A stretch of DNA of 64,000 bases, taken from assembly GCA_964057225.1 (NCBI GenBank), contig OZ059899.1, forward strand, positions 10,664,001 through 10,728,000, in the 5' to 3' direction. The translations under genes were made by a program, and so were the position numbers. Source of the DNA: Auanema rhodensis. Taxonomy: Eukaryota > Animalia > Nematoda. The notes under the pieces are model-generated. The model saw nothing but the letters and a program-made list of their open reading frames with translations. It was not told the DNA's origin and made no database searches. Within the stretch, counting starts at the first letter, position 1. The number at the start of each line of letters is the position of its first letter. Positions 9,921 through 64,000 of this stretch are shown here, piece by piece.

Positions 9921-12900
9921 CTCTCCTTTTTTTATATCAAACGGGAGTTTTATGTAATTGTAGAGAAATCAAGATCAGTCTGTTCTGTTCGAGTACTGTA
10001 AGACAGAAAGTTTCAATCTAATAGGCTCTTTATCAATGTTAATGTATAAGTTTAAATTGGATATCTAACAATCTTTTTCATTTTATTTCTTTTTGTTTGT
10101 TCTAAAGTAGGAAAAACTAGTTCTTTTCTTTCTAATTTCCATTCCAAATGTATTCGAATTCCAGGAAAATATATAAGGCCTTGTTCAACTAAGATTTCAG
10201 AAACTCTTATGAAAAAAAACTAAGACAATTGTGATGAGAGAAATTAAGAGAAAACCTATGGAGCTGACATTACATTTTTCGACAATATCACTAGATTCGA
10301 TATCATTGATATCCTGGAAACGTTATTCCTCTCCTTTTTTTATATCAAACGAGAGTTTTATGTAATCGTAGAGAAATCAGGATCAGTCTGTTCTGTTGAA
10401 GAACTGTAAGACAGAAAATTTCAATCTAATAGGCTTTTTATCAATGTTTATGTATAAGTTAAAATTGGATATCTAACAATCTTTTCATTTTATTCCTTAT
10501 TGTTTGTTTTAAAGTAGGAAAAATTTGTTTTTTTTTCTTTCTAACTTTCATCCAAAATGCTTTCGAATTCCAGGAAAATATATAAGGCCTTGGTCAACTA
10601 AGATTTCAGAAACTCTTATGAAAAAAAACTAAGACAATTGTGATGAGAGAAATTAAGAGAAAACCTATGGAGCTGACATTACATTTTTCGACAATATCAC
10701 TAGATCCGATATCATTGATATCCTGGAAACGTTATTCCTTTCCTTTTTTTATATCAAACGGGAGTTTTATGTAATTGTAGAGAAATCAAGATCAGTCTGT
10801 TCTGTTCGAGTACTGTAAGACAGAAAGTTTCAATCTAATAGGCTCTTTATCAATGTTATGTTTAAGTATAAGTTTAAATTGGATATCTAACAATCTTTTC
10901 ATTTTATTCCTTATTGTTTGTTTTAAAGTAGGAAAAAATTGTTTTTTTTTCTTTCTAATTTCCATTCCAAATGCTTTCGAATTCCAGGAAAATATATAAA
11001 GCCTTGTTCAACTAAGATTTCAGAAACTCTTATGAGAAAAAAAACTAAGACAATTGTGATGAGAGAAATTAAGAGAAAAACTATGGAACTGACTTTACAT
11101 TTTTCGACAATATCACTAGATTCGATATCATTGATATCCTGGTAACGTTATTCCTCTCCTTTTTTTATATCAAACGAGAGTTTTAAGTAATCGTAGAGAA
11201 ATCAGGATCAGTCTGTTCTGTTGAAGAACTGTAAGACAGAAAATTTCAATCTAATAGGCTTTTTATCAATGTTAATGTATAAGTTAAAATTGGATATCTA
11301 ACAATCTTTTCATTTTATTCCTTATTGTTTGTTTTAAAGTAGGAAAAAATTGTTTTTTTTTCTTTCTAATTTTCATCCAAAATGCTTTCGAATTCCAGGA
11401 AAATATATAAGACCTTGGTCAACTAAGATTTCAGAAACTCTTATGAAAAAAAACTAAGACAATTGTGATGAGAGAAATTAAGAGAAAACCTATGGAGCTG
11501 ACATTACATTTTTCGACAATATCACTAGATCCGATATCATTGATATCCTGGAAACGTTATTCCTCTCCTTTTTTTATATCAAACGGGAGTTTTATGTAAT
11601 TGTAGAGAAATCAAGATCAGTCTGTTCTGTTCGAGTACTGTAAGACAGAAAGTTTCAATCTAATAGGCTTTTTATCAATGTTATGTTTAGGTATAAGTTT
11701 AAATTGGATATCTAACAATCTTTTTCATTTTATTTCTTTTTGTTTGTTTCATAGTAGGAAAAACTAGTTCTTTTCTTTCTAATTTCCATCTAAAATACTT
11801 TCGAATTCCAGGAAAATATATAAGGACTTGTTCAACTAAGATTTCAGAAACTCTTATGAGAAAAAAAACTAAGACAATTGTGATGAGAGAAATTAAGAGA
11901 AAACCTATAGAGCTGACATTACATTTTTCGACAATATCACTAGATTCGATATCATTGATATCCTGGAAACGTTATTCCTCTCCTTTTTTTATATCAAACG
12001 AGAGTTTTATGTAATCGTAGAGAAATCAGGATCAGTCTGTTCTGTTGAAGAACTGTAAGACAGAAAATTTCAATCTAATAGGCTTTTTATCAATGTTAAT
12101 GTATAAGTTAAAATTGGATATCTAACAATCTTTTCATTTTATTCCTTATTGTTTGTTTTAAAGTAGGAAAAAATTGTTTTTTTTTTCTTTCTAATTTTCA
12201 TCCAAAATGCTTTCGAATTCCAGGAAAATATATAAGGCCTTGGTCAACTAAGATTTCAGAAACTCTTATGAAAAAAAACTAAGACAATTGTGATGAGAGA
12301 AATTAAGAGAAAACCTATGGAGCTGACATTACATTTTTCGACAATATCACTAGATCCGATATCATTGATATCCTGGAAACGTTATTCCTCTCCTTTTTTT
12401 ATATCAAACGGGAGTTTTATGTACTTGTAGAGAAATCAAGATCAGTCTGTTCTGTTCGAGTACTGTAAGACAGAAAGTTTCAATCTAATAGGCTCTTTAT
12501 CAATGTTAATGTATAAGTTTAAATTGGATATCTAACAATCTTTTTCATTTTATTTCTTTGTGTTTGTTTTAAAGTAGGAAAAAATTGTTTTTTTTTTTCT
12601 TTCTAATTTTCATCCAAAATGCTTTCGAATTCCAGGAAAATATATAAGGCCTTGTTCAACTAAGATTTCAGAAACTCTTATGAAAAAAACTAAGACAATT
12701 GTGATGAGAGAAATTAAGAGAAAACCTATGGAGCTGACATTACATTTTTCGACAATATCACTAGATTCGATATCATTGATATCCTGGAAACGTTATTCCT
12801 CTCCTTTTTTTATATCAAACGAGAGTTTTATGTAATCGTAGAGAAATCAGGATCAGTCTGTTCTGTTGAAGAACTGTAAGACAGAAAATTTCAATCTAAT

Positions 12901-13664
12901 AGGCTTTTTATCAATGTTTATGTATAAGTTAAAATTGGATATCTAACAATCTTTTCATTTTATTCCTTATTGTTTGTTTTAAAGTAGGAAAAATTTGTTT
13001 TTTTTTCTTTCTAACTTTCATCCAAAATGCTTTCGAATTCCAGGAAAATATATAAGGCCTTGGTCAACTAAGATTTCAGAAACTCTTATGAAAAAAAACT
13101 AAGACAATTGTGATGAGAGAAATTAAGAGAAAACCTATGGAGCTGACATTACATTTTTCGACAATATCACTAGATCCGATATCATTGATATCCTGGAAAC
13201 GTTATTCCTCTCCTTTTTTTATATCAAACGGGAGTTTTATGTAATTGTAGAGAAATCAAGATCAGTCTGTTCTTTTGGAGTACTGTAAGACAGAAACTTT
13301 CAATCTAATAGGCTTTTTATCAAAGTAAATGAATAAGTTTAAATTGGATATCTAACAATCTTTTTCATTTTATTTCTTATTGTTTGTTTCCAAGTATTAA
13401 AAACTAGTTCTTTTCTTTCTAATTTCCATCCAAAATGCTTTCGAATTCCAGGAAAATATATAAGGCCTTGGTCAACTAAGATTTCAGAAACTCTTATGAA
13501 AAAAACTAAGACAATTGTGATGAGAGAAATTAAGAGAAAACCTATGGAGCTGACATTACATTTTTCGACAATATCACTAGATCCGATATCATTGATATCC
13601 TGGAAACGTTATTCCTCTCCTTTTTTTATATCAAACGGGAGTTTTATGTAATTGTAGAGAAATC
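9921..13664 (+). repeat. ~409-bp tRNA-less satellite, ~9 monomers, alternating A/B dimer
   Basis: Unit landmark CCAGGAAAATATATAAGGCCTTG recurs every ~409-415 bp; TTCGAGTACTG and TTGAAGAACTG variants alternate. Confidence 0.95.
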
Positions 13665-13938
13665 TATTGAAGTTAATGTATGAGTTAAAATTGGATATCT
13701 AACACTCTTTTTTATTTTTTTTCTTATTGTTTTTTTTAAAATAGGAAAAACTAGTTCTTTTTTTTCTAATTTCAATCTGAAATGCTTTCGAATTTCAGAA
13801 AAATATATATGTTGACAACAAAGAAACTGCTCAAAACACGTTTTGTTCAACTGTGTAATTCTTATGACACAATGCAAAAAAAATCATGGAACAAATAAAT
13901 TCGATTTTTATGAATGACAAGTGAAATGAAAAAAATGA

Positions 13939-14011
13939 CGACCACGGCAAGATACGACCCTTCAATTTTCTGCTCCGTAAGCAGACGCGTTATCCATTGC
14001 GCCACGCGGCC
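13939..14011 (-). tRNA. tRNA-Arg-ACG: tRNA-Arg(ACG), degenerate T-arm (probable pseudogene)
   Basis: 73 nt; anticodon arm TCTGC-TTACGGA-GCAGA; T-arm GAAGGGTCGTATCTTG. Confidence 0.75.
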
Positions 14012-14544
14012 TTGTTTAAGTAAGATTTCAGAAACTCTTATGAGAGAAAAAACTAAGACGATTGTGATAAGAGAAATTAACAGAAAAACTATGAAGCCGA
14101 CATTGCATTTTTCTACATTATCAGTAGATCTCAAATCATTGATATCCCGGAAACGTTATTTCTATCCCTTTTTTATATCAAACGGGAGTTCTATGTGATC
14201 GTAGAAATGAGGATCAGTCTGTTCTGTTGGAGAACTGTAAGACAGAAATTTTCAATCTAATAGGTTTTTTTATTGAAGTTAATGTATAAGTTATAATTGG
14301 ATATCTAACACTCTTTTTTATTTTTTTCTTATTGTTTTTTTTAAAATAGGAAAAACTAGTTCTTTTTTCTCTAATTTCAATCTGAAATGCTTTCGAATTT
14401 CAGAAAAATATATATGTTGACAACAAAGAAACTGCTCAAAACACGTTTTGTTCAACTGTGTAATTCTTATGACACAATGCAAAATAATCATGGAAAAGAT
14501 AAATAAGATTTTTATGAATGACAAGTGGAATGAAAAAAAAATGA

Positions 14545-14617
14545 CGACCACGGCAGGATTTGACCCTACAATTTTCTGCTCCGTAGGCAGACGCGTTATC
14601 CATTGCGCCACGCGGCC
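14545..14617 (-). tRNA. tRNA-Arg-ACG: tRNA-Arg(ACG), T54G B-box variant
   Basis: 73 nt; T-loop GTCAAAT; oligo-T terminator 3 nt downstream. Confidence 0.8.
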
Positions 14618-15151
14618 TTGTTCAAGTAAGATTTCAGAAACTTTTATGATAGAAAAAACTTAGACGATTGTGATGAGAGAAATTAACAGGAAAACTATGA
14701 AGCTGACATTACATTTTTCTACATTATCAGTAGATCTCAAATCATTGATATCCTGGAAACGTTATTTCTATCCCTTTTTTATATGAAACGGGAGTTCTAT
14801 GTGATCGTAGAAATGAGGATCAGTCTGTTCTGTTGGAGAACTGTGAGACAGAAAATTTCAATCTAATAGGTTATTTTATCAAAGTTAATGTATAAGTTGA
14901 AATTGGATATCTAACACTCTTTTTTATTTTATTTCTCATTGTTTGTTTTAAAATAGGAAAAACTAGTTCTTTTTTTTTCTAATTTCAATCTGAAATGCTT
15001 TCGAATTTCAGAAAAATATATATGTTGACAACAAAGAAACTGCTCAAAACACGTTTTGTTCAACTGTGTAATTCTTATGACACAATGCAAAATAATCATG
15101 GAAAAGATAAATAAGATTTTTATGAATGACAAGTGAAATGAAAAAAAATGA

Positions 15152-15224
15152 CGACCACGGCAGGATTTGACCCTACAATTTTCTGCTCCGTAGGCAGACG
15201 CGTTATCCATTGCGCCACGCGGCC
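15152..15224 (-). tRNA. tRNA-Arg-ACG: tRNA-Arg(ACG), T54G B-box variant
   Basis: 73 nt; T-loop GTCAAAT; oligo-T terminator. Confidence 0.8.
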
Positions 15225-15757
15225 TTGTTCAACTAAGGTTTCAGAAACTCTTATGAGAAAAAAAACTAAGACAATTGTGATGAGAGCAGTTAAGAGAAAA
15301 ACTATGAAGCTGACATTACATTTTTCTACATTATCAGTAGATCTCAAATCATTGATATCCTGGAAACGTTATTTCTATCCCTTTTTTATATGAAACGGGA
15401 GTTTTATGTGATCGTAGAAATGAGGATCAGTCTGTTCTGTTGGAGAACTGTAAGACAGAAATTTTCAATCTAATAGGTTTTTTTATTAAAGTTAATGTAT
15501 AAGTTAAAATTGGATATCTAACACTCATTTTTATTTTTTTTCTTATTGTTTCTTTCAAAATAGGAAAAACTAGTTCTTTTTTTTCTAATTTCAATCTGAA
15601 ATGCTTTCGAATTTCAGAAAAATATATATGTTGACAACAAAGAAACTGCTCAAAACACGTTTTGTTCAACTGTGTAATTCTTATGACACAATGCAAAATA
15701 ATCATGGAAAAGATAAATAAGATTTTTATGAATGACAAGTGAAATGAAAAAAAATGA

Positions 15758-15830
15758 CGACCACGGCAGGATTCGAACCTACAATCTTCTGCTCCGTAGG
15801 CAGACGCGTTATCCATTGCGCCACGCGGCT
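15758..15830 (-). tRNA. tRNA-Arg-ACG: tRNA-Arg(ACG), near-intact (G1A only)
   Basis: Intact A box TGGCGCAATGG and B box GGTTCGAATCC; A1:C72 mismatch. Confidence 0.9.
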
Positions 15831-16363
15831 TTGTTCAAGTAAGATTTCAGAAACTCTTATGATAGAAAAAACTAAGACGATTGTGATGAGAGAAATTACC
15901 AGAAAAACTATGAAGCTGACATTACATTTTTCTACATTATCAGTAGATCTCAAATCATTGATATCCTGGAAACGTTATTCCTCTTCTTTTTTCATATCAA
16001 ACGGGAGTTTTATGTGATCGTAGAAATGAGGATCAGTCTGTTCTGTTGGAGAACTGTAAGACAGAAATTTTCAATCTAATAGGTTATTTTATCAAAGTTA
16101 ATGTATAAGTTGAAATTGGATATCTAACACTCTTTTTTATTTTATTTCTCGTTGTTTGTTTAAGAATAGGAAAAACTAGTTCTTTTTTTTCTAATTTCAA
16201 TCTGAAATGCTTTCGAATTTCAGAAAAATATATATGATGACAACAAAGAAACTGCTCAAAACACGTTTTGTTCAACTGTGTAATTCTTATGACACAATGC
16301 AAAATAATCATGGAAAAGATAAATAAGATTTTTATGAATGACAAGTGAAATGAAAAAAAATGA

Positions 16364-16436
16364 CGACCACGGCAGGATTCGAACCTACAATCTTCTGCTC
16401 CGTAGGCAGACGCGTTATCCATTGCGCCACGCGGCT
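16364..16436 (-). tRNA. tRNA-Arg-ACG: tRNA-Arg(ACG), near-intact (G1A only)
   Basis: Intact A and B boxes; A1:C72 mismatch. Confidence 0.9.
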
Positions 16437-16838
16437 TTGTTCAAGTAAGATTTCAGAAACTCTTATGATAGAAAAAACTAAGACGATTGTGATGAGAGAA
16501 ATTAACAGAAAAAGTATGAAGCTGACATTACATTTTTCTACATTATCAGTAGATCTCAAATCATTGATATCCTGGAAACGTTATTTCTATCCCTTTTTTA
16601 TATCAAACGGGAGTTTTATGTGATCGTAGAAATGAGGATCAGTCTGTTCTGTTGGAGAACTGTAAGACAGAAATTTTCAATATAATAGGTTATTCTATCA
16701 AAGTTAATGTATAAGTTGAAATTGGATTCTAACACTCTTTTTTATTTTATTTCTCATTGTTTGTTTTAGAATAGGAAAAACTAGTTCTTTTTTTTTCTAA
16801 TTTCAATCTGAAATGCTTTCGAATTTCAGAAAAATATA

Positions 16839-17514
16839 CAGTCATGTGTAAAAGAAAAAGGGCAAGATTTAGAAAATATTAGAATCTGGAGCTCAGACTA
16901 CAATTTAGGAATCTGAAAAAAATCGATAATGGCTAGGAATTATGTTGCTAAAAAATGGAGCTGAATTCATTTTTTAAAACTAACTTTGAAATGTATTATT
17001 TTGGAAATTAAAATGATTCAGCTTCATTTTTAATATGCAAATTTAGATGGTTCAAGGCAGAAGATACAGCAACGAGATGAGGGAGACAGTCCTCAGGCTC
17101 GAAGACGAAGGGTTTGCAACCCGAAAAATTGCTGCTTTTACGGCTATCTCGAAGAGCTGCGTTCAAGCCATCATCAAGGATCACAGCCAAGGAGTAGCAA
17201 TGATAAAGCGGAATAGATTCATCTTCCAGCAGGACAACGACCTAAAGCACACTGCTCATTCAACTAAACAGTGGTTTCAGCAGAATAGGGTCACTCTCTT
17301 ACCCTGGCCTAGTCAATCGCCCGATCTGAATCCGATCGAACATCTATGGAGAGATTTGGGAAGAAGGGCGGCTCAATTTCCGTCATCGAACAAGGACGAG
17401 AAGTTCAGATGCCTAAGAATCCTCTGGCGAGAAACTTCTCCGGGTATTTTGAAGAAGCTCGTCAATTCGATGAATAGAAGGCTCAAAGCTGTGATTGATA
17501 ATTTCGGGTATTAT
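16839..17514 (+). mobile_element. Tc1-like (DD34E) transposon, internally deleted, right end lost
   Basis: TA at 16837-16838 then CAGT terminus; transposase ORF follows; array resumes in opposite orientation at ~17515. Confidence 0.9.
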
Positions 17515-17517
17515 TAA
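17047..17517 (+). pseudogene. Tc1 transposase with in-frame internal deletion
   Basis: N-terminal HTH fused directly to FIFQQDNDLKHT...WPSQSPDLNPIEHLW (34 residues between D and E); first catalytic D missing. Confidence 0.92.
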
Positions 17518-17773
17518 AAACCTATTAGATTGAAAATTTCTGTCTTACAGTTCTTCAACAGAACAGACTGATCCTCATTTCTACGATCACATAAAACTCC
17601 CGTTTGATATAAAAAAGGGATAGAAATAACGTTTCCAGGATATCAATGATTTGAGATCTACTGATAATGTAGAAAAATGTAATGTCAGCTTCATAGTTTT
17701 CCTGTTAATTTCTCTCATCACAATCGTCTAAGTTTTTTCTATCATAAAAGTTTCTGAAATCTTACTTGAACAA

Positions 17774-17846
17774 GGCCGCGTGGCGCAATGGATAACGCGT
17801 CTGCCTACGGAGCAGAAAATTGTAGGGTCAAATCCTGCCGTGGTCG
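17774..17846 (+). tRNA. tRNA-Arg-ACG: tRNA-Arg(ACG), T54G variant
   Basis: 73 nt; T-loop GTCAAAT; T-run terminator. Confidence 0.8.
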
Positions 17847-18380
17847 TCATTTTTTTTTCATTCCACTTGTCATTCATAAAAATCTTATTTATCTTTTCCA
17901 TGATTATTTTGCATTGTGTCATAAGAATTACACAGTTGAACAAAACGTGTTTTGAGCAGTTTCTTTGTTGTCAACATATATATTTTTCTGAAATTCGAAA
18001 GCATTTCAGATTGAAATTAGAAAAAAAAGAACTACTTTTTCCTATTTTAAAAAAAACAATAAGAAAAAAAATAAAAAAGAGTGTTAGATATCCAATTTTA
18101 ACTTATACATTAACTTCAATAAAAAAACCTATTAGATTGAAAATTTCTGTCTTACAGTTCTCCAACAGAACAGACTGATCCTCATTTCTACGATCACATA
18201 AAACTCCCGTTTGATATAAAAAAGGGATAGAAATAACGTTTCCAGGAAATCAATGATTTGAGATCTACTGATAATGTAGAAAAATGTAATGTCAGCTTCA
18301 TAGTTTTTCTGTTGATTTCTCTCATCACAATCGTCTTAGTTTTTTCTATCATAAGAGTTTCTGAAATCTTACTTGAACAA

Positions 18381-18453
18381 GGCCGCGTGGCGCAATGGAC
18401 AACGCGTCTGCCTACGGGGCAGAAAATTGTAGGGTCAGATCCTGCCGTGGTCG
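18381..18453 (+). tRNA. tRNA-Arg-ACG: tRNA-Arg(ACG), degenerate
   Basis: T-loop GTCAGAT; anticodon loop CTACGGG. Confidence 0.7.
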
Positions 18454-18986
18454 TCATTTTTTTTCATTTCACTTGTCATTCATAAAAATCTTATTTATCT
18501 TTTCCATGATTATTTTGCATTGTGTCATAAGAATTACACAGTTGAACAAAACGTGTTTTGAGCAGTTTCTTTGTTGTCAACATATATATTTTTCTGAAAT
18601 TCGAAAGCATTTCAGATTGAAATTAGAAAAAAAAGAACTAGTTTTTCCTATTTTGAAAGAAACAATAAGAAAAAAAATAAAAATGAGTGTTAGATATCCA
18701 ATTTTAACTTATACATTAACTTTAATAAAAAAACCTATTAGATTGAAAATTTCTGTCTTACAGTTCTCCAACAGAACAGACTGATCCTCATTTCTACGAT
18801 CACATAGAACTCCCGTTTGATATAAAAAAGGGAAAGAAATAACGTTTCCAGGATATCAATGATTTGAGATCTACTGATAATGTAGAAAAATGTAATGTCA
18901 GCTTCATAGTTTTTCTGGTAATTTCTCTCATCACAATCGTCTTAGTTTTTTCTATCATAAGAGTTTCTGAAATCTTACTTGAACAA

Positions 18987-19059
18987 AGCCGCGTGGCGCA
19001 ATGAATAACGCTTCTGCCTACGGAGCAGAAAATTGTAGGGTCAAATCCTGCCGTGATCG
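18987..19059 (+). tRNA. tRNA-Arg-ACG: tRNA-Arg(ACG), degenerate
   Basis: G1A, D-loop AATGAAT, T54G, acceptor change. Confidence 0.65.
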
Positions 19060-19593
19060 TCATTTTTTTTTCATTTCACTTGTCATTCATAAAAATCTTA
19101 TTTATCTTTTCCATGATTATTTTGCATTGTGTCATAAGAAATACACAGTTGAACAAAACGTGTTTTGAGCAGTTTCTTTGTTGTCAACATATATATTTTT
19201 CTGAAATTCGAAAGCATTTCAGATTGAAATTAGAAAAAAAAGAACTAGTTTTTCCTATTTTAAAAAAAACAATAAGAAAAAAAATAAAAAAGAGTGTTAG
19301 ATATCCAATTTTAACTTATACATTAACTTCAATAAAAAAACCTATTAGATTGAAAATTTCTGTCTTACAGTTCTCCAACAGAACAGACTGATCCTCATTT
19401 CTACGATCACATAGAACTCCCGTTTCATATAAAAAAGGGATAGAAATAACGTTTCCAGGAAATCAATGATTTGAGATCTACTGATAATGTAGAAAAATGT
19501 AATGTCAGCTTCATAGTTTTTCTGGTAATTTCTTTCATCACAATCGTCTTAGTTTTTTCTATCATAAGAGTTTCTGAAATCTTACTTGAACAA

Positions 19594-19666
19594 AGCCGCG
19601 TGGCGCAATGGATAACGCGTCTGCCTACGGAGCAGAAAATTGTAGGGTCAAATCCTGCCGTGGTCG
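19594..19666 (+). tRNA. tRNA-Arg-ACG: tRNA-Arg(ACG), G1A + T54G variant
   Basis: 73 nt; T-loop GTCAAAT. Confidence 0.75.
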
Positions 19667-20199: not shown

Positions 20200-20272
20200 G
20201 GCCGCGTGGCGCAATGGATAACGCGTCTGCCTACGGAGCAGAAAATTGTAGGGTCAAATCCTGCCGTCGTCG
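20200..20272 (+). tRNA. tRNA-Arg-ACG: tRNA-Arg(ACG), T54G + acceptor variant
   Basis: Ends CCGTCGTCG; T-loop GTCAAAT. Confidence 0.75.
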
Positions 20273-51600: not shown

Positions 51601-54600
51601 TTTTATCGAAGTAAATGTACAAGTTTAAATTGGATATCTAACAATCTTTTTCATTTTAATTCTTTTTGTTCGTTTTAAAGTAGGAAAAACTAGTTCTTTC
51701 CTTTCTAATTTCCATTCCAAATGCTTTCGAATTCCAGGAAAATATATAAGGCCTTGGTCAACTAAGATTTCAGAAACTCTTATGAGAAAAAACTAAGACA
51801 ATTGTGATGAGAGAAATTAAGAGAAAACCTATTGAGCTGACATTACATTTTTCGACAATATCAGTAGATTCGAAATAATTGATATCCTGGAAACGTTATT
51901 CCTCTCCTTTTTTTATATCAAACGAGAGTTTCATGAAATCGTAGAGAAATCAGGATCAGTCTGTTCTGTTGGAGAACTATAAAACATAACAGTTCAATCT
52001 AATAGGCTTTTTATCGAAGTAAATGTATAAGTTTAAATTGGATATCTAACAATCTTTTTCATTTTATTTCTTTTTGTTTGTTTTAAAGTAGAAAAAATTA
52101 GTTCTTTTCTTTTTAATTTCCATCCTAAATTTTTTCGAATTCCAGGAAAATATATAAGGCCTTGTTCAACTAAGATTTCAGAAACTCTTATGAGAAAAAA
52201 AACTAAGACAATTGTGATGAGAGAAATAAAGAGAAAAACTATGGAGCTGACATTACATTTTTCGACAATATCAGTAGATTCGAAATAATTGATATCCTGG
52301 AAACGTTATTCTTCTCCTTTTTTTATATCAAACGAGAGTTTTATGTAATCGTAGAGAAATCAGGATCAGTCTGTTCTGTTGGAGAACTGTAATTCATAAA
52401 AGTTCAATCTAATAGGCTTTTTATCGAAGTAAATGTACAAGTTTAAATTGGATATCTAACAATCTTTTTCATTTTAATTCTTTTTGTTCGTTTTAAAGTA
52501 GGAAAAACTAGTTCTTTCCTTTCTAATTTCCATTCCAAATGCTTTCGAATTCCAGGAAAATATATAAGGCCTTGGTCAACTAAGATTTCAGAAACTCTTA
52601 TGAGAAAAAACTAAGACAATTGTGATGAGAGAAATTAAGAGAAAACCTATTGAGCTGACATTACATTTTTCGACAATATCAGTAGATTCGAAATAATTGA
52701 TATCCTGGAAACGTTATTCCTCTCCTTTTTTTATATCAAACGAGAGTTTCATGAAATCGTAGAGAAATCAGGATCAGTCTGTTCTGTTGGAGAACTATAA
52801 AACATAACAGTTCAATCTAATAGGCTTTTTATCGAAGTAAATGTATAAGTTTAAATTGGATATCTAACAATCTTTTTCATTTTATTTCTTTTTGTTTGTT
52901 TTAAAGTAGAAAAAATTAGTTCTTTTCTTTTTAATTTCCATCCTAAATTTTTTCGAATTCCAGGAAAATATATAAGGCCTTGTTCAACTAAGATTTCAGA
53001 AACTCTTATGAGAAAAAAAACTAAGACAATTGTGATGAGAGAAATAAAGAGAAAAACTATGGAGCTGACATTACATTTTTCGACAATATCAGTAGATTCG
53101 AAATAATTGATATCCTGGAAACGTTATTCTTCTCCTTTTTTTATATCAAACGAGAGTTTTATGTAATCGTAGAGAAATCAGGATCAGTCTGTTCTGTTGG
53201 AGAACTGTAATTCATAAAAGTTCAATCTAATAGGCTTTTTATCGAAGTAAATGTACAAGTTTAAATTGGATATCTAACAATCTTTTTCATTTTAATTCTT
53301 TTTGTTCGTTTTAAAGTAGGAAAAACTAGTTCTTTCCTTTCTAATTTCCATTCCAAATGCTTTCGAATTCCAGGAAAATATATAAGGCCTTGGTCAACTA
53401 AGATTTCAGAAACTCTTATGAGAAAAAACTAAGACAATTGTGATGAGAGAAATTAAGAGAAAACCTATTGAGCTGACATTACATTTTTCGACAATATCAC
53501 TAGATTCGATATCATTGATATCCTGGAAACGTTATTCCTCTACTTTTTTATATCACACGAGAGTTTAATGTAATCATAGAGAAATCAGGATCAGTCTGTT
53601 CTGTTGGAGAACTGTAAGACATAAAAGTTCAATCTAATAGGCTTTTTATCGAAGTAAATGTACAAGTTTAAATTGGATATCTAACAATCTTTTTCATTTT
53701 ATTTCTTTTTGTTTGTTTTAAAGTAGGAGAAACTAGTTCTTTTCTTTCTAATTTCCATTCCAAATGCTTTCGATTTCCAGGAAAATATATAAGGCCTTGT
53801 TCAACTAAAATTTCAGAAACTCTTATGACAAAAAAAAACTAAGACAATTGTGATGAGAGAAATTAAGAGAAAAACTATGGAGCTGACATTACATTTTTCG
53901 ACAATATCAGTAGATTCGAAATAATTGATATCCTGGAAACGTTATTCCTCTCCTTTTTTTATATCAAACGAGAGTTTCATGTAATCGTAGAGAAATCAGG
54001 ATCAGTCTGTTCTGTTGGAGAACTGTAATACATAAAAGTTCAATCTAATAGGCTTTTTATCGAAGTAAATGTACAAGTTTAAATTGGATATCTAACAATC
54101 TTTTTCATTTTAATTCTTTTTGTTCGTTTTAAAGTTGGAAAAACTAGTTCTTTCCTTTCTAATTTCCATTCCAAATGCTTTCGAATTCCAGGAAAATATA
54201 TAAGGCCTTGGTCAACTAAGATTTCAGAAACTCTTATGAGAAAAAACTAAGACAATTGTGATGAGAGAAATTAAGAGAAAACCTATTGAGCTGACATTAC
54301 ATTTTTCGACAATATCAGTAGATTCGAAATAATTGATATCCTGGAAACGTTATTCCTCTCCTTTTTTTATATCAAACGAGAGTTTCATGAAATCGTAGAG
54401 AAATCAGGATCAGTCTGTTCTGTTGGAGAACTATAAAACATAACAGTTCAATCTAATAGGCTTTTTATCGAAGTAAATGTATAAGTTTAAATTGGATATC
54501 TAACAATCTTTTTCATTTTATTTCTTTTTGTTTGTTTTAAAGTAGAAAAAATTAGTTCTTTTCTTTTTAATTTCCATCCTAAATTTTTTCGAATTCCAGG

Positions 54601-57600
54601 AAAATATATAAGGCCTTGTTCAACTAAGATTTCAGAAACTCTTATGAGAAAAAAAACTAAGACAATTGTGATGAGAGAAATAAAGAGAAAAACTATGGAG
54701 CTGACATTACATTTTTCGACAATATCAGTAGATTCGAAATAATTGATATCCTGGAAACGTTATTCTTCTCCTTTTTTTATATCAAACGAGAGTTTTATGT
54801 AATCGTAGAGAAATCAGGATCAGTCTGTTCTGTTGGAGAACTGTAATTCATAAAAGTTCAATCTAATAGGCTTTTTATCGAAGTAAATGTACAAGTTTAA
54901 ATTGGATATCTAACAATCTTTTTCATTTTAATTCTTTTTGTTCGTTTTAAAGTAGGAAAAACTAGTTCTTTCCTTTCTAATTTCCATTCCAAATGCTTTC
55001 GAATTCCAGGAAAATATATAAGGCCTTGGTCAACTAAGATTTCAGAAACTCTTATGAGAAAAAACTAAGACAATTGTGATGAGAGAAATTAAGAGAAAAC
55101 CTATTGAGCTGACATTACATTTTTCGACAATATCAGTAGATTCGAAATAATTGATATCCTGGAAACGTTATTCCTCTCCTTTTTTTATATCAAACGAGAG
55201 TTTCATGAAATCGTAGAGAAATCAGGATCAGTCTGTTCTGTTGGAGAACTATAAAACATAACAGTTCAATCTAATAGGCTTTTTATCGAAGTAAATGTAT
55301 AAGTTTAAATTGGATATCTAACAATCTTTTTCATTTTATTTCTTTTTGTTTGTTTTAAAGTAGAAAAAATTAGTTCTTTTCTTTTTAATTTCCATCCTAA
55401 ATTTTTTCGAATTCCAGGAAAATATATAAGGCCTTGTTCAACTAAGATTTCAGAAACTCTTATGAGAAAAAAAACTAAGACAATTGTGATGAGAGAAATA
55501 AAGAGAAAAACTATGGAGCTGACATTACATTTTTCGACAATATCAGTAGATTCGAAATAATTGATATCCTGGAAACGTTATTCTTCTCCTTTTTTTATAT
55601 CAAACGAGAGTTTTATGTAATCGTAGAGAAATCAGGATCAGTCTGTTCTGTTGGAGAACTGTAATTCATAAAAGTTCAATCTAATAGGCTTTTTATCGAA
55701 GTAAATGTACAAGTTTAAATTGGATATCTAACAATCTTTTTCATTTTAATTCTTTTTGTTCGTTTTAAAGTAGGAAAAACTAGTTCTTTCCTTTCTAATT
55801 TCCATTCCAAATGCTTTCGAATTCCAGGAAAATATATAAGGCCTTGGTCAACTAAGATTTCAGAAACTCTTATGAGAAAAAACTAAGACAATTGTGATGA
55901 GAGAAATTAAGAGAAAACCTATTGAGCTGACATTACATTTTTCGACAATATCAGTAGATTCGAAATAATTGATATCCTGGAAACGTTATTCCTCTCCTTT
56001 TTTTATATCAAACGAGAGTTTCATGAAATCGTAGAGAAATCAGGATCAGTCTGTTCTGTTGGAGAACTATAAAACATAACAGTTCAATCTAATAGGCTTT
56101 TTATCGAAGTAAATGTATAAGTTTAAATTGGATATCTAACAATCTTTTTCATTTTATTTCTTTTTGTTTGTTTTAAAGTAGAAAAAATTAGTTCTTTTCT
56201 TTTTAATTTCCATCCTAAATTTTTTCGAATTCCAGGAAAATATATAAGGCCTTGTTCAACTAAGATTTCAGAAACTCTTATGAGAAAAAAAACTAAGACA
56301 ATTGTGATGAGAGAAATAAAGAGAAAAACTATGGAGCTGACATTACATTTTTCGACAATATCAGTAGATTCGAAATAATTGATATCCTGGAAACGTTATT
56401 CTTCTCCTTTTTTTATATCAAACGAGAGTTTTATGTAATCGTAGAGAAATCAGGATCAGTCTGTTCTGTTGGAGAACTGTAATTCATAAAAGTTCAATCT
56501 AATAGGCTTTTTATCGAAGTAAATGTACAAGTTTAAATTGGATATCTAACAATCTTTTTCATTTTAATTCTTTTTGTTCGTTTTAAAGTAGGAAAAACTA
56601 GTTCTTTCCTTTCTAATTTCCATTCCAAATGCTTTCGAATTCCAGGAAAATATATAAGGCCTTGGTCAACTAAGATTTCAGAAACTCTTATGAGAAAAAA
56701 CTAAGACAATTGTGATGAGAGAAATTAAGAGAAAACCTATTGAGCTGACATTACATTTTTCGACAATATCACTAGATTCGATATCATTGATATCCTGGAA
56801 ACGTTATTCCTCTACTTTTTTATATCACACGAGAGTTTAATGTAATCATAGAGAAATCAGGATCAGTCTGTTCTGTTGGAGAACTGTAAGACATAAAAGT
56901 TCAATCTAATAGGCTTTTTATCGAAGTAAATGTACAAGTTTAAATTGGATATCTAACAATCTTTTTCATTTTATTTCTTTTTGTTTGTTTTAAAGTAGGA
57001 GAAACTAGTTCTTTTCTTTCTAATTTCCATTCCAAATGCTTTCGATTTCCAGGAAAATATATAAGGCCTTGTTCAACTAAAATTTCAGAAACTCTTATGA
57101 GAAAAAAAACTAAGACAATTGTGATGAGAGAAATTAAGAGAAAAACTATGGAGCTGACATTACATTTTTCGACAATATCAGTAGATTCGAAATAATTGAT
57201 ATCCTGGAAACGTTATTCCTCTCCTTTTTTTATATCAAACGAGAGTTTTATGTAATCGTAGAGAAATCAGGATCAGTCTGTTCTGTTGGAGAACTGTAAT
57301 TCATAAAAGTTCAATCTAATAGGCTTTTTATCGAAGTAAATGTATAAGTTTAAATTGGATATCTAACAATCTTTTTCATTTTATTTCTTTTTGTTTGTTT
57401 TAAAGTAGGAAAAACTAGTTCTTTTTTTTCTAATTTCCATTCCAAATGCTTTCGAATTCCAGGAAAATATATAAGGCCTTGTTCAACTGAAATTTCAGAA
57501 ACTCTTATGAGAAAAAAAACTAAGAAAATTGTGATGAGAGAAATTAAGAGAAAACCTATTGAGCTGACATTACATTTTTCGACAATATCACTAGATTCGA

Positions 57601-60600
57601 TATCATTGATATCCTGGAAACGTTATTCCTCTACTTTTTTATATCACACGAGAGTTTTATGTAATCGTAGAGAAATCAGGATCAGTCTGTTCTGTTGGAG
57701 AACTGTAATACATAAAAGTTCAATCTAATAGGCTTTTTATCAAAGTAAATGTATAAGTTTAAATTGGATATCTAACAATCTTTTTCATTTTAATTCTTTT
57801 TGTTCGTTTTAAAGTTGGAAAAACTAGTTCTTTCCTTTCTAATTTCCATTCCAAATGCTTTCGAATTCCAGGAAAATATATAAGGCCTTGGTCAACTAAG
57901 ATTTCAGAAACTCTTATGAGAAAAAACTAAGACAATTGTGATGAGAGAAATTAAGAGAAAAACTATGGAGCTGACATTACATTTTTCGACAATATCAGTA
58001 GATTCGAAATAATTGATATCCTGGAAACGTTATTCTTCTCCTTTTTTTATATCAAACGAGAGTTTTATGTAATCGTAGAGAAATCAGGATCAGTCTGTTC
58101 TGTTGGAGAACTGTAATTCATAAAAGTTCAATCTAATAGGCTTTTTATCGAAGTAAATGTACAAGTTTAAATTGGATATCTAACAATCTTTTTCATTTTA
58201 ATTCTTTTTGTTCGTTTTAAAGTAGGAAAAACTAGTTCTTTCCTTTCTAATTTCCATTCCAAATGCTTTCGAATTCCAGGAAAATATATAAGGCCTTGGT
58301 CAACTAAGATTTCAGAAACTCTTATGAGAAAAAACTAAGACAATTGTGATGAGAGAAATTAAGAGAAAACCTATTGAGCTGACATTACATTTTTCGACAA
58401 TATCAGTAGATTCGAAATAATTGATATCCTGGAAACGTTATTCCTCTCCTTTTTTTATATCAAACGAGAGTTTCATGAAATCGTAGAGAAATCAGGATCA
58501 GTCTGTTCTGTTGGAGAACTATAAAACATAACAGTTCAATCTAATAGGCTTTTTATCGAAGTAAATGTATAAGTTTAAATTGGATATCTAACAATCTTTT
58601 TCATTTTATTTCTTTTTGTTTGTTTTAAAGTAGAAAAAATTAGTTCTTTTCTTTTTAATTTCCATCCTAAATTTTTTCGAATTCCAGGAAAATATATAAG
58701 GCCTTGTTCAACTAAGATTTCAGAAACTCTTATGAGAAAAAAAACTAAGACAATTGTGATGAGAGAAATAAAGAGAAAAACTATGGAGCTGACATTACAT
58801 TTTTCGACAATATCAGTAGATTCGAAATAATTGATATCCTGGAAACGTTATTCTTCTCCTTTTTTTATATCAAACGAGAGTTTTATGTAATCGTAGAGAA
58901 ATCAGGATCAGTCTGTTCTGTTGGAGAACTGTAATTCATAAAAGTTCAATCTAATAGGCTTTTTATCGAAGTAAATGTACAAGTTTAAATTGGATATCTA
59001 ACAATCTTTTTCATTTTAATTCTTTTTGTTCGTTTTAAAGTAGGAAAAACTAGTTCTTTCCTTTCTAATTTCCATTCCAAATGCTTTCGAATTCCAGGAA
59101 AATATATAAGGCCTTGGTCAACTAAGATTTCAGAAACTCTTATGAGAAAAAACTAAGACAATTGTGATGAGAGAAATTAAGAGAAAACCTATTGAGCTGA
59201 CATTACATTTTTCGACAATATCACTAGATTCGATATCATTGATATCCTGGAAACGTTATTCCTCTACTTTTTTATATCACACGAGAGTTTAATGTAATCA
59301 TAGAGAAATCAGGATCAGTCTGTTCTGTTGGAGAACTGTAAGACATAAAAGTTCAATCTAATAGGCTTTTTATCGAAGTAAATGTACAAGTTTAAATTGG
59401 ATATCTAACAATCTTTTTCATTTTATTTCTTTTTGTTTGTTTTAAAGTAGGAGAAACTAGTTCTTTTCTTTCTAATTTCCATTCCAAATGCTTTCGATTT
59501 CCAGGAAAATATATAAGGCCTTGTTCAACTAAAATTTCAGAAACTCTTATGAGAAAAAAAACTAAGACAATTGTGATGAGAGAAATTAAGAGAAAAACTA
59601 TGGAGCGCACATTACATTTTTCGACAATATCAGTAGATTCGAAATAATTGATATCCTGGAAACGTTATTCCTCTCCTTTTTTTATATCAAACGAGAGTTT
59701 TATGTAATCGTAGAGAAATCAGGATCAGTCTGTTCTGTTGGAGAACTGTAATACATAAAAGTTCAATCTAATAGGCTTTTTATCGAAGTAAATGTATAAG
59801 TTTAAATTGGATATCTAACAATCTTTTTCATTTTATTTCTTTTTGTTTGTTTTAAAGTAGGAAAAACTAGTTCTTTTCTTTCTAATTTCCATTCCAAATG
59901 CTTTCGAATTCCAGGAAAATATATAAGGCCTTGTTCAACTGAAATTTCAGAAACTCTTATGAGAAAAAAAACTAAGAAAATTGTGATGAGAGAAATTAAG
60001 AGAAAACCTATTGAGCTGACATTACATTTTTCGACAATATCACTAGATTCGATATCATTGATATCCTGGAAACGTTATTCCTCTACTTTTTTATATCACA
60101 CGAGAGTTTTATGTAATCGTAGAGAAATCAGGATCAGTCTGTTCTGTTGGAGAACTGTAATACATAAAAGTTCAATCTAATAGGCTTTTTATCGAAGTAA
60201 ATGTATAAGTTTAAATTGGATATCTAACAATCTTTTTCATTTTATTTCTTTTTGTTTGTTTTAAAGTAGGAAAAACTAGTTCTTTTCTTTCTAATTTCCA
60301 TTCCAAATGCTTTCGAATTCCAGGAAAATATATAAGGCCTTGTTCAACTAAAATTTCAGAAACTCTTATGAGAAAAAAAACTAAGAAAATTGTGATGAGA
60401 GAAATTAAGAGAAAACCTATTGAGCTGACATTACATTTTTCGACAATATCACTAGATTCGATATCATTGATATCCTGGAAACGTTATTCCTCTACTTTTT
60501 TATATCACACGAGAGTTTAATGTAATCATAGAGAAATCAGGATCAGTCTGTTCTGTTGGAGAACTGTAAGACATAAAAGTTCAATCTAATAGGCTTTTTA

Positions 60601-63600
60601 TCGAAGTAAATGTACAAGTTTAAAGTGGATATCTAACAATCTTTTTCATTTTATTTCTTTTTGTTTGTTTTAAAGTAGGAGAAACTAGTTCTTTTCTTTC
60701 TAATTTCCATTCCAAATGCTTTCGATTTCCAGGAAAATATATAAGGCCTTGTTCAACTAAAATTTCAGAAACTCTTATGAGAAAAAAAACTAAGACAATT
60801 GTGATGAGAGAAATTAAGAGAAAAACTATGGAGCGCACATTACATTTTTCGACAATATCAGTAGATTCGAAATAATTGATATCCTGGAAACGTTATTCCT
60901 CTCCTTTTTTTATATCAAACGAGAGTTTTATGTAATCGTAGAGAAATCAGGATCAGTCTGTTCTGTTGGAGAACTGTAATACATAAAAGTTCAATCTAAT
61001 AGGCTTTTTATCGAAATAAATGTATAAGTTTAAATTGGATATCTAACAATCTTTTTCATTTTATTTCTTTTTGTTTGTTTTAAAGTAGGAAAACCTAGTT
61101 CTTTTCTTTCTAATTTCCATTCCAAATGCTTTCGAATTCCAGGAAAATATATAAGGCCTTGTTCAACTAAAATTTCAGAAACTCTTATGAGAAAAAAAAC
61201 TAAGAAAATTGTGATGAGAGAAATTAAGAGAAAACCTATTGAGCTGACATTACATTTTTCGACAATATCACTAGATTCGATATCATTGATATCCTGGAAA
61301 CGTTATTCCTCTACTTTTTTATATCACACGAGAGTTTAATGTAATCATAGAGAAATCAGGATCAGTCTGTTCTGTTGGAGAACTGTAAACATAAAAGTTC
61401 AATCTAATAGGCTTTTTATCGAAGTAAATGTACAAGTTTAAATTGGATATCTAACAATCTTTTTCATTTTATTTCTTTTTGTTTGTTTTAAAGTAGGAGA
61501 AACTAGTTCTTTTCTTTCTAATTTCCATTCCAAATGCTTTCGATTTCCAGGAAAATATATAAGGCCTTGTTCAACTAAAATTTCAGAAACTCTTATGAGA
61601 AAAAAAACTAAGACAATTGTGATGAGAGAAATTAAGAGAAAAACTATGGAGCTGACATTACATTTTTCGACAATATCAGTAGATTCGAAATAATTGATAT
61701 CCTGGAAACGTTATTCCTCTCCTTTTCTTATATCAAACGAGAGTTTCATGTAATCGTAGAGAAATCAGGATCAGTCTGTTCTGTTGGAGAACTGTAATAC
61801 ATAAAAGTTCAATCTAATAGACTTTTTATCGAAGTAAATGTACAAGTTTAAATTGGACATCTAACAATCTTTTTCATTTTTTTTCTTTTTGTTTGTTTTA
61901 AAGTAGGAAAAACTAGTTCTTTTCTTTCTAATTTCCATTCCAAATGCTTTCGAATTCCAGGAAAATATATAAGGCCTTGTTCAACTAAAATTTCAGAAAC
62001 TCTTATGAGAAAAAAAAACTAAGAAAATTGTGATGAGAGAAATTAAGAGAAAACCTATTGAGCTGACATTACATTTTTCGACAATATCACTAGATTCGAT
62101 ATCATTGATATCCTGGAAACGTTATTCCTCTACTTTTTTATATCAAACGAGAGTTTAATGTAATCATAGAGAAATCAGGATCAGTCTGTTCTGTTGGAGA
62201 ACTGTAAGACATAAAAGTTCAATCTAATAGGCTTTTTATCAAAATAAATGTACAAGTTTAAATTGGATATCTAACAATCTTTTTCATCTTATTTCTTTTT
62301 GTTTGTTTTAAAGTAGGAGAAACTAGTTCTTTTCTTTCTAATTTCCATTCCAAATGCTTTCGAATTCCAGGAAAATATATAAGGCCTTGTTCAACTAAAA
62401 TTTCAGAAACTCTTATGAGAAAAAAAACTAAGACAATTGTGATGAGAGAAATTAAGAAAAAAACTATGGAGCTGACATTACATTTTTCGACAATATCAGT
62501 AGATTCGAAATAATTGATATCCTGAAAACGTTATTCCTCTCCTTTTTTTATATCAAACGAGAGTTTCATGTAATCGTAGAGAAATCAGGATCAGTCTGTT
62601 CTGTTGGAGAACTGTAATACATAAAAGTTCAATCTAATAGGCTTTTTATCGAAGTAAATGTACAAGTTTAAATTGGATATCTAACAATCTTTTTCATATT
62701 ATTTCTTTTTGTTTGTTTTAAAGTAGGAAAAACTAGTTCTTTTCTTTCTAGTTTCCATTCCAAATGCTTTCGAATTCCAGGAAAATATATAAGGCCTTGT
62801 TCAACTAAAATTTCAGGAACTCTTATGAGAAAAAAAACTAAGACAATTGTGATGAGAGAAATTAAGAGAAAAACTATGGAGCTGACATTACATTTTTCGA
62901 CAATATCAGTTGATTCGAAATAATTGATATCCTGGAAACGTTATTCTTCTCCTTTTTTTATATCAAACGAGAGTTTTTTGTAATCGTAGAGAAATCAGGA
63001 TCAGTCTGTTCTGTTGGAGAACTGTAATACATAAAAGTTCAATCTAATAGGCTTTTTATCGAAGTAAATGTATAAGTTTAAATTGGATATCTAACAATCT
63101 TTTTCATTTTATTTCTTTTTGTTTGTTTTAAAGTAGGAAAAACTAGTTCTTTTCTTTCTAATTTCCATTCCAAATGCTTTCGAATTCCAGGAAAATATAT
63201 AAGGCCTTGTTCAACTGAAATTTCAGAAACTCTTATGAGAAAAAAAACTAAGAAAATTGTGATGAGAGAAATTAAGAGAAAACCTATTGAGCTGACATTA
63301 CATTTTTCGACAATATCACTAGATTCGATATCATTGATATCCTGGAAACGTTATTCCTCTACTTTTTTATATCACACGAGAGTTTTATGTAATCGTAGAG
63401 AAATCAGGATCAGTCTGTTCTGTTGGAGAACTGTAATACATAAAAGTTCAATCTAATAGGCTTTTTATCGAAGTAAATGTATAAGTTTAAATTGGATATC
63501 TAACAATCTTTTTCATTTTATTTCTTTTTGTTTGTTTTAAAGTAGGAAAAACTAGTTCTTTTCTTTCTAATTTCCATTCCAAATGCTTTCGAATTCCAGG

Positions 63601-64000
63601 AAAATATATAAGGCCTTGTTCAACTAAAATTTCAGAAACTCTTATGAGAAAAAAAACTAAGAAAATTGTGATGAGAGAAATTAAGAGAAAACCTATTGAG
63701 CTGACATTACATTTTTCGACAATATCACTAGATTCGATATCATTGATATCCTGGAAACGTTATTCCTCTACTTTTTTATATCACACGAGAGTTTAATGTA
63801 ATCATAGAGAAATCAGGATCAGTCTGTTCTGTTGGAGAACTGTAAGACATAAAAGTTCAATCTAATAGGCTTTTTATCGAAGTAAATGTACAAGTTTAAA
63901 TTGGATATCTAACAATCTTTTTCATTTTATTTCTTTTTGTTTGTTTTAAAGTAGGAGAAACTAGTTCTTCTCTTTCTAATTTCCATTCCAAATGCTTTCG
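45611..64000 (+). repeat. Homogeneous ~409-bp satellite (~45 monomers, continues past window) with higher-order structure
   Basis: 409-bp period; 818-bp dimer blocks and longer multi-monomer duplications. Confidence 0.97.

Follow-up and report, generated by a model that had tools for sequence, protein, structure and literature searches.

The 64,000-nucleotide stretch of nematode DNA analyzed here (the window) carries long arrays of a 409-bp satellite that, with a probability of roughly 0.78, descended from a ~606-bp tandem unit containing a tRNA-Arg(ACG) gene, via a single deletion followed by amplification. In the scenario that we favor, tandem tRNA-Arg(ACG) units of ~606 bp would be the ancestral state, and one of these units would have lost, in a single DNA-level deletion of ~198 bp, tRNA nucleotides 5–73 together with the proximal 127 bp of the 3' flank. 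Repair of the break, presumably by end joining, would have added one untemplated A between the ends; the resulting tRNA-less unit has neither A box, nor B box, nor terminator. Unequal crossing-over and segmental duplication, in a probably neutral process, would then have multiplied this unit to form long arrays in which higher-order repeats are dimeric; tRNA-less units now appear to be several-fold more numerous than tRNA-bearing units. Three full units that persist at 42.9–45.2 kb would be relics of the satellite's parental lineage, mixed with monomers by unequal exchange.

Organization of the arrays

Arrays of the satellite monomer, arrays of tRNA-bearing (full) units, and a mosaic zone in which the two are interleaved were delineated in the window (Table 1). 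TRF detected 409/410-bp arrays at 9921–13664 (9.1 copies) and 43577–64000. ARAGORN predicted 26 tRNA-Arg(ACG) genes at ~606-bp spacing, namely, 5 on the minus strand at 13.9–16.4 kb (the left tRNA-unit array), 18 uninterrupted genes on the plus strand at 17.8–35.5 kb (the main array), and 3 on the minus strand at 43.5–45.2 kb; 22 of the 26 are supported by Rfam, with scores of 36.6–52.4 bits. Eight further tRNAs of the main array are split by one common 456-bp insertion. The sequence-only reading described 13.7–36.5 kb as full arrays, and the units there, 606–609 bp long at 13.7–36.1 kb, indeed bear tRNAs; however, they lie in two blocks of opposite orientation that meet at a Tc1-like fragment, and eight of them carry the insertion inside the tRNA.

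Table 1. Features of the window
Feature	Position	Strand	Remarks
Left satellite array (S_left)	9916..13664	+	8 full and 2 partial monomers, 407–413 bp
Left tRNA-unit array (F_left)	13665..16838	-	4 full and 2 partial units, 606–607 bp
Tc1/mariner-type transposase fragment, internally deleted, at inversion junction	16839..17512	+	PF13358 DDE_3, E 3e-11
Main tRNA-unit array (F_main)	17513..36557	+	25 units, inverted relative to the other arrays
456-bp insertions in F_main tRNAs	22631, 24290, 27767, 29427, 30480, 32139, 33799, 36067		
Mosaic boundary zone	42865..45610	+	partial S, F42970, S43577, F43986, F44594, S45203; tRNAs on minus strand
Example of the block absent from the satellite, ~198 bp	44394..44593	-	tRNA nt 5–73 and 127-bp 3' flank, T-run terminator
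Right satellite array (S_right)	45611..64000	+	44 full monomers, plus a last one truncated at the window end
Example satellite junction, CCAGGAAAATATATA-A-GGCCTTG	46415..46437	+	

The left satellite array starts at unit position 149 and adjoins a truncated retroelement protease ORF. The first unit of the left tRNA-unit array is a satellite/full hybrid with a 65-bp register jump, from satellite position 203 to full-unit position 270. The tRNA gene of the example block lies at 44525–44597. For the Tc1-like fragment, the closest atlas cluster consists entirely of Nematoda. An env-like ORF yielded weak atlas leads only, and a homologue search with a Maverick-like ORF gave none.

The 407–413-bp monomer forms long tandem arrays of 9.1 and at least 45 copies, in keeping with satellite DNA, in which a monomer longer than 100 bp is repeated many times; the right array is more than 18 kb long and continues beyond the window end. 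No tRNA or Rfam match was found in the satellite arrays with ARAGORN and Rfam, nor any B-box match within 1 mismatch in the monomer, and the longest stop-free stretch of the monomer is 55 aa, so that it contains no gene. Identity between monomers is higher at lag 2 (0.972) than at lag 1 (0.954), and the right array contains dimeric and larger higher-order repeats, with alternating groups in which as many as 9 monomers are identical. These lag identities and groups of identical monomers are the marks of higher-order structure or concerted evolution.

A single junction shared by all monomers

When one full unit was compared with the window using BLAST, satellite monomers matched unit positions 1–409 only, whereas full units matched positions 1–609; over the whole 409 bp, the monomer is 87–93% identical to the tRNA unit. 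When 86 units, including 54 satellite monomers, were aligned with MAFFT, all 54 showed one gap of 197–198 columns with identical ends. Thus, the monomer is collinear with the 606–608-bp tRNA unit save for one gap, as the sequence-only reading maintained. All 54 monomers also share the same junction, ...ATATATA-A-GGCCTTG, including the untemplated A, which answers the call for a single shared breakpoint. Compared with the full unit, the junction lacks tRNA nucleotides 5–73 and 127 bp of the 3' flank and has gained one untemplated A; it reads distal tRNA 3' spacer and one extra A, followed by tRNA nucleotides 4–1 and 5' flank, the latter two on the complementary strand. Only the first four tRNA bases survive, as had been noted: the remaining GGCC corresponds to tRNA nucleotides 1–4 and sits beside the tRNA's own 5' flank. 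The satellite is therefore tDNA spacer, as had been proposed, plus 4 nt of tRNA. The strings by which the two forms had been described do exist: CCAGGAAAATATATAAGGCCTTG occurs 50 times and CCAGGAAAATATATATGTTGAC twice in the window, but the units of the main array do not read CCAGGAAAATATATA; they read TTTCAGAAAAATATATA, and CCAGGAAAATATATA is found among full units only in the three interleaved ones.

A retroposed or SINE-derived satellite would be expected to keep a tRNA-like head with promoter boxes or to show retrocopy hallmarks such as a CCA or A-tail or a target-site duplication. Here, only tRNA nucleotides 1–4 are present, the full unit carries a T-run terminator of genomic type, and a target-site duplication is lacking. 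In this respect, the satellite is indeed, as had been claimed, the opposite of tRNA-keeping satellites, given that the tRNA body and both promoter boxes constitute the lost part.

Phylogeny of the units and age of the satellite

In the monomer tree, which is unrooted, all satellite units and the three interleaved full units are separated from the left and main tRNA-unit arrays with 100/99 support. The expectation that the 409-bp units would nest within the 608-bp subfamily was not borne out, the main tRNA arrays being a separate clade. Rather, the three interleaved full units fall within satellite diversity, and the free tree needs 4 state changes, although a topology that keeps all satellite monomers together as a clade is not rejected (p-AU 0.09). 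Because the free tree scatters these three units inside satellite diversity, recombination is needed under any scenario. A recent 1,065-bp duplication (43262–44325 = 44886–45950, about 99.3% identical) stops ~60 bp short of the block, which accounts for this placement and for the pairing of the full unit F43986 with the monomer S45612. The interleaved zone, portrayed as one of several coexisting stages, is a mosaic produced by unequal crossover that contains two independent block copies only, and a coexistence of all stages is not supported.

The idea of a satellite caught being born is likewise not supported. It has diverged from the main array by ~12–13% (identity of 0.87 over the shared part), its two arrays differ from each other by 7.4% (shared-part identity 0.926), it has dimeric higher-order structure, and the identical junction is found also in contigs under a second organism label. 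The satellite is an established family that was amplified well before the present, probably from one old deletion.

The contigs came from a search with one full unit against four runs from three studies, under three organism labels. The shared part and the block were present in contigs of all four runs, and the block-skipping junction under labels A and C; organism C contigs with the junction, including the A between the two sides, had depths of 1678 and 174. Summed contig depth was high in the four runs, although depth is not a copy number, and contig depth of the shared part was ~3–7x that of the block's 3' flank, a rough figure because contig depth is a poor measure of copy number. A run lacking either of the two forms, which could have served as an outgroup, was sought among the four and not found. 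Organisms A and C may be very close relatives, because both have contigs at least 99% identical to this locus, and the minimum age derived from junction sharing may accordingly be small.

Direction of the event and alternative explanations

As judged from the sequences, deletion is considerably more probable than insertion, because there is no target-site duplication, GGCC is retained, and the divergence of the block between the two clades matches that of the spacer. Rather than a retrocopy or a SINE, the block represents a genomic tRNA gene together with its flank and T8 terminator. Its ends (ATATATA/TGTTGAC ... CCACGC/GGCCTTG) show no target-site duplication, the feature that the sequence-only reading had named as speaking for a later insertion of the tRNA segment, and no terminal repeats or mobile-element hallmark. 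The 3' flank of the block is 88.4% identical between the interleaved and main-array units, and the shared part 87.7%; thus, the block is as diverged between the clades as the spacer and, therefore, was already present in their common ancestor. Midpoint rooting also favors an ancestral gene array and a derived satellite, and concerted evolution undermines clock-based rooting. Since one breakpoint, with its untemplated A, is shared by the 54 monomers and the contigs of the other label, one event was amplified. The notion of one amplified deletion thus stands as far as a single amplified event is concerned, whereas the direction is favored rather than settled, with an unrooted tree and both forms present in every run examined.

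Insertion, which we consider quite unlikely, would start from an ancestral 409-bp satellite, in one monomer of which a ~198-bp fragment replaced an A, the tRNA-bearing unit then being amplified; tRNA nucleotides 5–73 with the 127-bp 3' flank would have fortuitously completed a tRNA with the resident GGCC. The unrooted tree, the greater abundance of the satellite, and the nesting of the three full units near it in its diversity are compatible with this course of events. However, it is at odds with the featureless block ends, and it calls for a chance pairing of the resident 4 nt with the acceptor 3' strand (~1/32 with G-U allowed, 1/256 for exact identity). Furthermore, such an insertion must predate the clade split, given that the block diverged like the spacer, yet the interleaved full units are much closer to the satellite (identity of 0.93) than to the main array (0.877).

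Still starting from the full unit, the ~198-bp segment might have been deleted repeatedly at a fragile or targeted site, for example, when a Tc1/mariner element, which targets TA, excised imprecisely from the TATATA tract; the satellite would then be polyphyletic. The 4 state changes of the free tree would fit, as would a Tc1-like TA-CAGT end that lies within this tract at a distance of 2 bp from the left breakpoint of the satellite, but independent end-joining events are expected to differ, whereas the ends and the extra A are identical in all 54 monomers and in the organism C contigs. The best full/satellite sister pair is explained by the duplication ending 60 bp before the block, and satellite monophyly is not rejected, so that recurrent deletion appears very unlikely. 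An assembly artefact, in which collapsed or mis-joined repeats mimic deleted units, has to be considered for any long tandem array, these being error-prone, especially as groups of identical monomers are present. It is nevertheless extremely improbable: the block and the block-skipping junction occur in independently assembled contigs from four runs of three studies, and the monomers show structured variation and higher-order repeats.

Decay of the tRNA arrays

The 26 tRNA copies comprise 14 variants, and 3 of them have an exact B box. In the arrays of full units, nucleotide diversity (pi) is 0.059 in the tRNA body and 0.028–0.031 in the spacer, and the 456-bp insertion in the tRNA has been amplified 8 times, with at least 99% identity. 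In a functional array, the tRNAs should be better conserved than the spacer and keep canonical A and B boxes; the full units do not show this pattern. Judging by these sequence patterns, the tRNA arrays evolve as decaying tRNA-pseudogene satellites, and purifying selection has left no trace in the tRNA. We rejected CpG methylation decay as the cause of the faster change of the tRNA body, the CpG observed/expected ratio being 0.83–1.02; AT-biased mutation of an unselected GC-rich segment seems to be the simpler reading. Large single-isoacceptor tRNA arrays can thus represent repeats in decay and not batteries of working genes, a point of relevance to the tRNA gene counts of genome annotations.

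Relation to known satellites and significance

Intergenic spacers of rRNA arrays are a known source of satellite DNA, as in the spacer-related satellites of potato, Vicia, and Nicotiana (PMC5615363, PMC12692304). There, as here, an RNA-gene array seeds a gene-less spacer satellite that is amplified and dispersed independently of the array. The source in the present case is, however, a Pol III tRNA array rather than rDNA and, unlike in the amplification of spacer subrepeats, the whole spacer became one monomer after a single precise gene loss. Neither of the two reviews mentions tRNA arrays as a source of satellite DNA.

Tandem repeats that trace back to tRNA genes, or to elements derived from such genes, include newt PolIII/TAN, Xenopus OAX/satellite I, Rana/polIII, Hy/polIII, and the SINE-derived satellites of squamates (PMC10702118). 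These keep a tRNA-like segment, in many cases together with Pol III promoter boxes, and retroposition or SINEs gave rise to several of them. In the 409-bp satellite, by contrast, a DNA-level event removed the tRNA body along with both promoter boxes. The frog PcP190 satellite, derived from 5S rDNA, likewise descends from a tandem Pol III gene array but is reported to retain a conserved region that resembles transcribed 5S sequence (PMC11675491), compared with 4 nt of the gene in our case. Tandem tRNA gene arrays are known in Entamoeba (PMC2652664) and in Hydractinia and Nematostella (PMC11067881), with unit lengths between a few hundred bp and a few kb, one to a few tRNAs per unit, tens to hundreds of copies, and highly similar spacers. 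The full-unit arrays are alike in these respects, but the arrays in those organisms consist of apparently functional genes, and no tRNA-less satellite is reported for them (PMC2652664, PMC11067881), whereas the array tRNAs here are heterogeneous and mostly degenerate. Our literature search found no description of the 409-bp satellite, nor of any tRNA array that had given rise to a tRNA-less derivative, which is not proof of novelty.

No new mechanism is involved: a deletion with subsequent unequal crossing-over belongs to the textbook dynamics of satellites. A further-reaching, rather unlikely possibility is that tRNA arrays serve as satellite nurseries, where loss of the Pol III gene frees a unit from the limits of tDNA arrays, such as replication-transcription conflict or transposable elements targeting tRNA genes, and allows it to out-amplify its parent. 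If so, the excess of tRNA-less units would reflect an amplification advantage from gene loss, not drift. The arrays could also be germline-restricted if the host nematode has programmed DNA elimination. Satellite origins are seldom traceable to one molecular event. In this window, the parent unit survives together with the exact breakpoint and apparent relics of the parental units, providing a resolved case of a spacer-derived satellite from a Pol III array.

Arrangement of the satellite and tRNA arrays

The window contains 26 tRNA-Arg(ACG) genes, mostly spaced by ~606 bp (ARAGORN), 22 of which are backed by the Rfam tRNA model (36.6–52.4 bits). A BLAST search of the window with a single full unit (the tRNA-bearing repeat, 44594–45202) separates full units, matching along their entire length, from satellite monomers, matching only the first two-thirds or so of the query (see table). 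What a sequence-only reading had taken for one full array is, in fact, two inverted blocks with an internally deleted Tc1/mariner-type element between them. The 156-aa ORF of this element is an HTH fused to the C-terminal DDE_3 part; the closest atlas cluster, a family of 153 aa, is restricted to Nematoda (score 0.93), which makes a nematode the probable host.

The boundary between the left satellite and the left tRNA array is an illegitimate junction that joins satellite position 203 to unit position 270. The left satellite itself starts abruptly, mid-monomer (monomer position 149), abutting a truncated retroelement protease ORF, which bears a protease-like DTGAS motif and runs into the satellite; either the element or the array was truncated here. 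The main array ends within a tRNA, against a 6.3-kb stretch (38% GC) with short ORFs lacking Pfam hits, among them a signal-peptide-like ORF. Transposable elements are dense throughout the neighbourhood of the left flank of the window, which harbors a Maverick-like ORF, with no homologue detectable in a large protein search, and a Mos1-type ORF.

Repeat arrays and other features of the locus (window positions)
Feature	Positions	Strand or orientation	Details	Source
Left flank, Maverick-like and Mos1-type ORFs	458–4405			
Mos1-type HTH_48 ORF	3935–4405			
Retroelement ORF	9439–9957		cut at 9916–9920	
Satellite monomers	9916–13664; 45203–64000; single monomer 43577–43984		unit positions 1–409 only	BLAST
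409/410-bp array	9921–13664		9.1 copies, 93% matches	Tandem Repeats Finder
409/410-bp array	43577–64000		50 copies, 91% matches	Tandem Repeats Finder
Full units	13670–16838	as query	unit positions 1–609	BLAST
5 tRNA-Arg(ACG) genes	13.9–16.4 kb	−		ARAGORN
Tc1/mariner-type element	16839–17512		junction of two inverted tRNA arrays; DDE_3, E 3e-11	Pfam
Full units	17513–36066	inverted	unit positions 1–609	BLAST
18 tRNA-Arg(ACG) genes	17.8–35.5 kb	+		ARAGORN
456-bp insertion	22631–23086; copies at 24290, 27767, 29427, 30480, 32139, 33799, 36067		main block	
35-bp tRNA piece	36523–36557		end of main array	
6.3-kb stretch	36558–42864			
149-aa ORF	37118–37567	−	signal-peptide-like	
Full units	42970–45202		unit positions 1–609	BLAST
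3 tRNA-Arg(ACG) genes	43.5–45.2 kb	−		ARAGORN
Higher-order pattern, right satellite	46840–59515		alternating a/b monomer runs (408/410 bp)	

A single junction shared by all satellite monomers

The satellite junction string CCAGGAAAATATATAAGGCCTTG occurs 50 times in the window and the full-unit string CCAGGAAAATATATATGTTGAC twice. When 86 units are aligned with MAFFT, a single gap of 197–198 columns with identical ends is present in all 54 satellite monomers. Together with the BLAST map, these results confirm the strings quoted in the earlier reading and the proposed collinearity of the two units outside a single gap, and the breakpoint is indeed one and the same in every monomer. The block missing from the satellite consists, on the tRNA strand, of tRNA nt 5–73, a T8 terminator and 127 bp of 3' flank. 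The satellite retains GGCC (tRNA nt 1–4) adjoining the 5' flank of the tRNA, with one extra A at the joint.

Relationships among the units

The unrooted maximum-likelihood tree, built on 411 shared columns, splits into two clades (100/99 support), one comprising every unit of the left and main tRNA arrays and the other uniting all satellite monomers with the three full units from the 42.9–45.2 kb zone, where the two forms are interleaved. Mean identity in the shared part is 0.87 between the satellite and the main tRNA array, 0.93 between the satellite and the interleaved full units, 0.926 between the left and right satellites, and 0.961 within the right satellite. Judging from the clade split and these identities, the large tRNA arrays adjoining the satellite are a sister lineage 12–13% away rather than its parents. 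The predicted nesting of the 409-bp units within the 608-bp subfamily was not seen; rather, the three interleaved full units sit inside the satellite diversity. A tree forcing all satellite monomers into one clade was not rejected by the AU test (delta lnL 35.9, p 0.09).

The full unit starting at 43986 is sister to the monomer S45612 (100/96 support) because of a 1,065-bp duplication (43262–44325 versus 44886–45950, ~7 differences in direct comparison). The duplication stops ~60 bp short of the block; beyond that point, one copy runs on into the tRNA block and the other into the satellite junction. The blocks of the full units starting at 42970 and 44594 are 100% identical despite spacers that are only 91.7% identical; the zone thus contains only two independent copies of the block. 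The interleaved zone is a mosaic shuffled by duplication and unequal exchange, not a transitional series, and the adjoining tRNA arrays are distant, so that there is no support for the picture of coexisting stages and of a satellite "caught being born".

The satellite contains higher-order repeats, with identity of 0.972 at lag 2 versus 0.954 at lag 1. In the right satellite, the pattern is of variable length, with nine identical copies each of the a and b monomers and runs broken by c, d, e and f types, which points to very recent unequal exchanges.

Direction of the event

The two forms could be related by insertion of the block into a tRNA-less unit instead of deletion from a full one. Insertion, however, would require four resident bases to complete the acceptor stem by chance (~1/32 allowing G-U pairs, by our arithmetic), and no duplicated sequence or terminal repeats are seen at the block ends (ATATATA/TGTTGAC and CCACGC/GGCCTTG). 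Rather than a retrocopy or a SINE, the block is a genomic tRNA gene together with its terminator and flank. Furthermore, interleaved and main-array units share 88.4% identity over the 3' flank of the block, which is thus as diverged as the shared spacer (87.7%); this implies that the block predates the split of the two clades. The interleaved full units nevertheless resemble the satellite far more than the main array. A full-unit ancestor followed by one loss would thus be the simplest history of the satellite clade. These arguments fall short of proof because the tree lacks a root and clock-based reasoning is undermined by concerted evolution; nevertheless, the original proposal that the satellite is tDNA spacer amplified after one deletion is supported, with a confidence of about 80% in the direction.

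Under the deletion scenario, 198 bp would have been lost in a single event from one unit of a parental tRNA array that is now mostly gone, and end joining with a 1-nt filler would have closed the break. The tRNA-less unit would then have been amplified through unequal crossing-over and have spread to further loci, with presumably neutral dynamics. The TA-CAGT end of the Tc1-like element lies within the same TATATA tract as the deletion, 2 bp from the left breakpoint, so that excision-associated repair at a TA-target hot spot is conceivable as the trigger, although we give this little weight.

The junction in other samples

We compared a full unit (44200–44800, with the block in the middle) with contigs of four runs under coded organism labels, A (two studies), B and C. 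Both the shared part and the block are covered in all four runs, and none of the four has only one of the two forms. Block-skipping joints of 198–201 bp, with an A between the sides, are present in organism C contigs (depths 1678 and 174), along with a variant joint (depth 790); organism A contigs contain block-skipping joints and loose ends with the sequence ...CAGGAAAATATATA just ahead of position 44593. Thus, the junction exists beyond the assembly of the window and under a second label; contigs with at least 99% identity to the locus also occur under label C, which means that A and C may be closely related. By contig depth, a rough guide, the shared part exceeds the block 3' flank roughly 3–7 times in all four runs, suggesting that tRNA-less units predominate.

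Comparison with known satellites and tRNA arrays

According to two reviews, satellite DNA can originate from rDNA intergenic spacers, transposable elements, and micro- and minisatellites; tRNA is absent from the whole text of both (PMC5615363, PMC12692304). The known tRNA-related satellites, namely, newt PolIII/TAN, Xenopus OAX, Rana/polIII, Hy/polIII and the SINE-derived satellites of squamates, keep a tRNA-like segment (PMC10702118), in contrast to the 409-bp satellite, which keeps only GGCC of the tRNA. Papers describing tandem tRNA arrays of Entamoeba (PMC2652664) and of Hydractinia and Nematostella (PMC11067881) make no mention of a tRNA-less derivative. The 409-bp satellite is best filed as a variant among spacer-derived satellites.

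Decay of the tRNA arrays

The 26 tRNAs represent 14 sequence variants, and an exact B box (GGTTCGANNCC) is present in only 3 copies; in the commonest variant (8 copies), which scores 38.8 bits, the T arm is disrupted. Across the left and main arrays, the tRNA body has a nucleotide diversity of 0.059 and the spacer one of 0.028–0.031, the opposite of the expectation under purifying selection. Because CpG is not depleted (observed/expected 0.83–1.02), we attribute this excess to what would be AT-biased mutation in a GC-rich segment not under selection. In eight units of the main block, the tRNA is interrupted in its D-arm/A-box region, following GGCGCAATGG, by the same 456-bp insertion, which has a duplicated AATGG at its far side. 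All eight copies share at least 99% identity and have identical flanks, which indicates one insertion amplified along with the array within a higher-order repeat. The sequence variants, the loss of the B box, the diversity excess and the amplified insertion show that the tRNA arrays behave as decaying satellites themselves. Most of the array tRNAs (13939–35529) look like pseudogenes and, as such, would inflate counts of tRNA genes.
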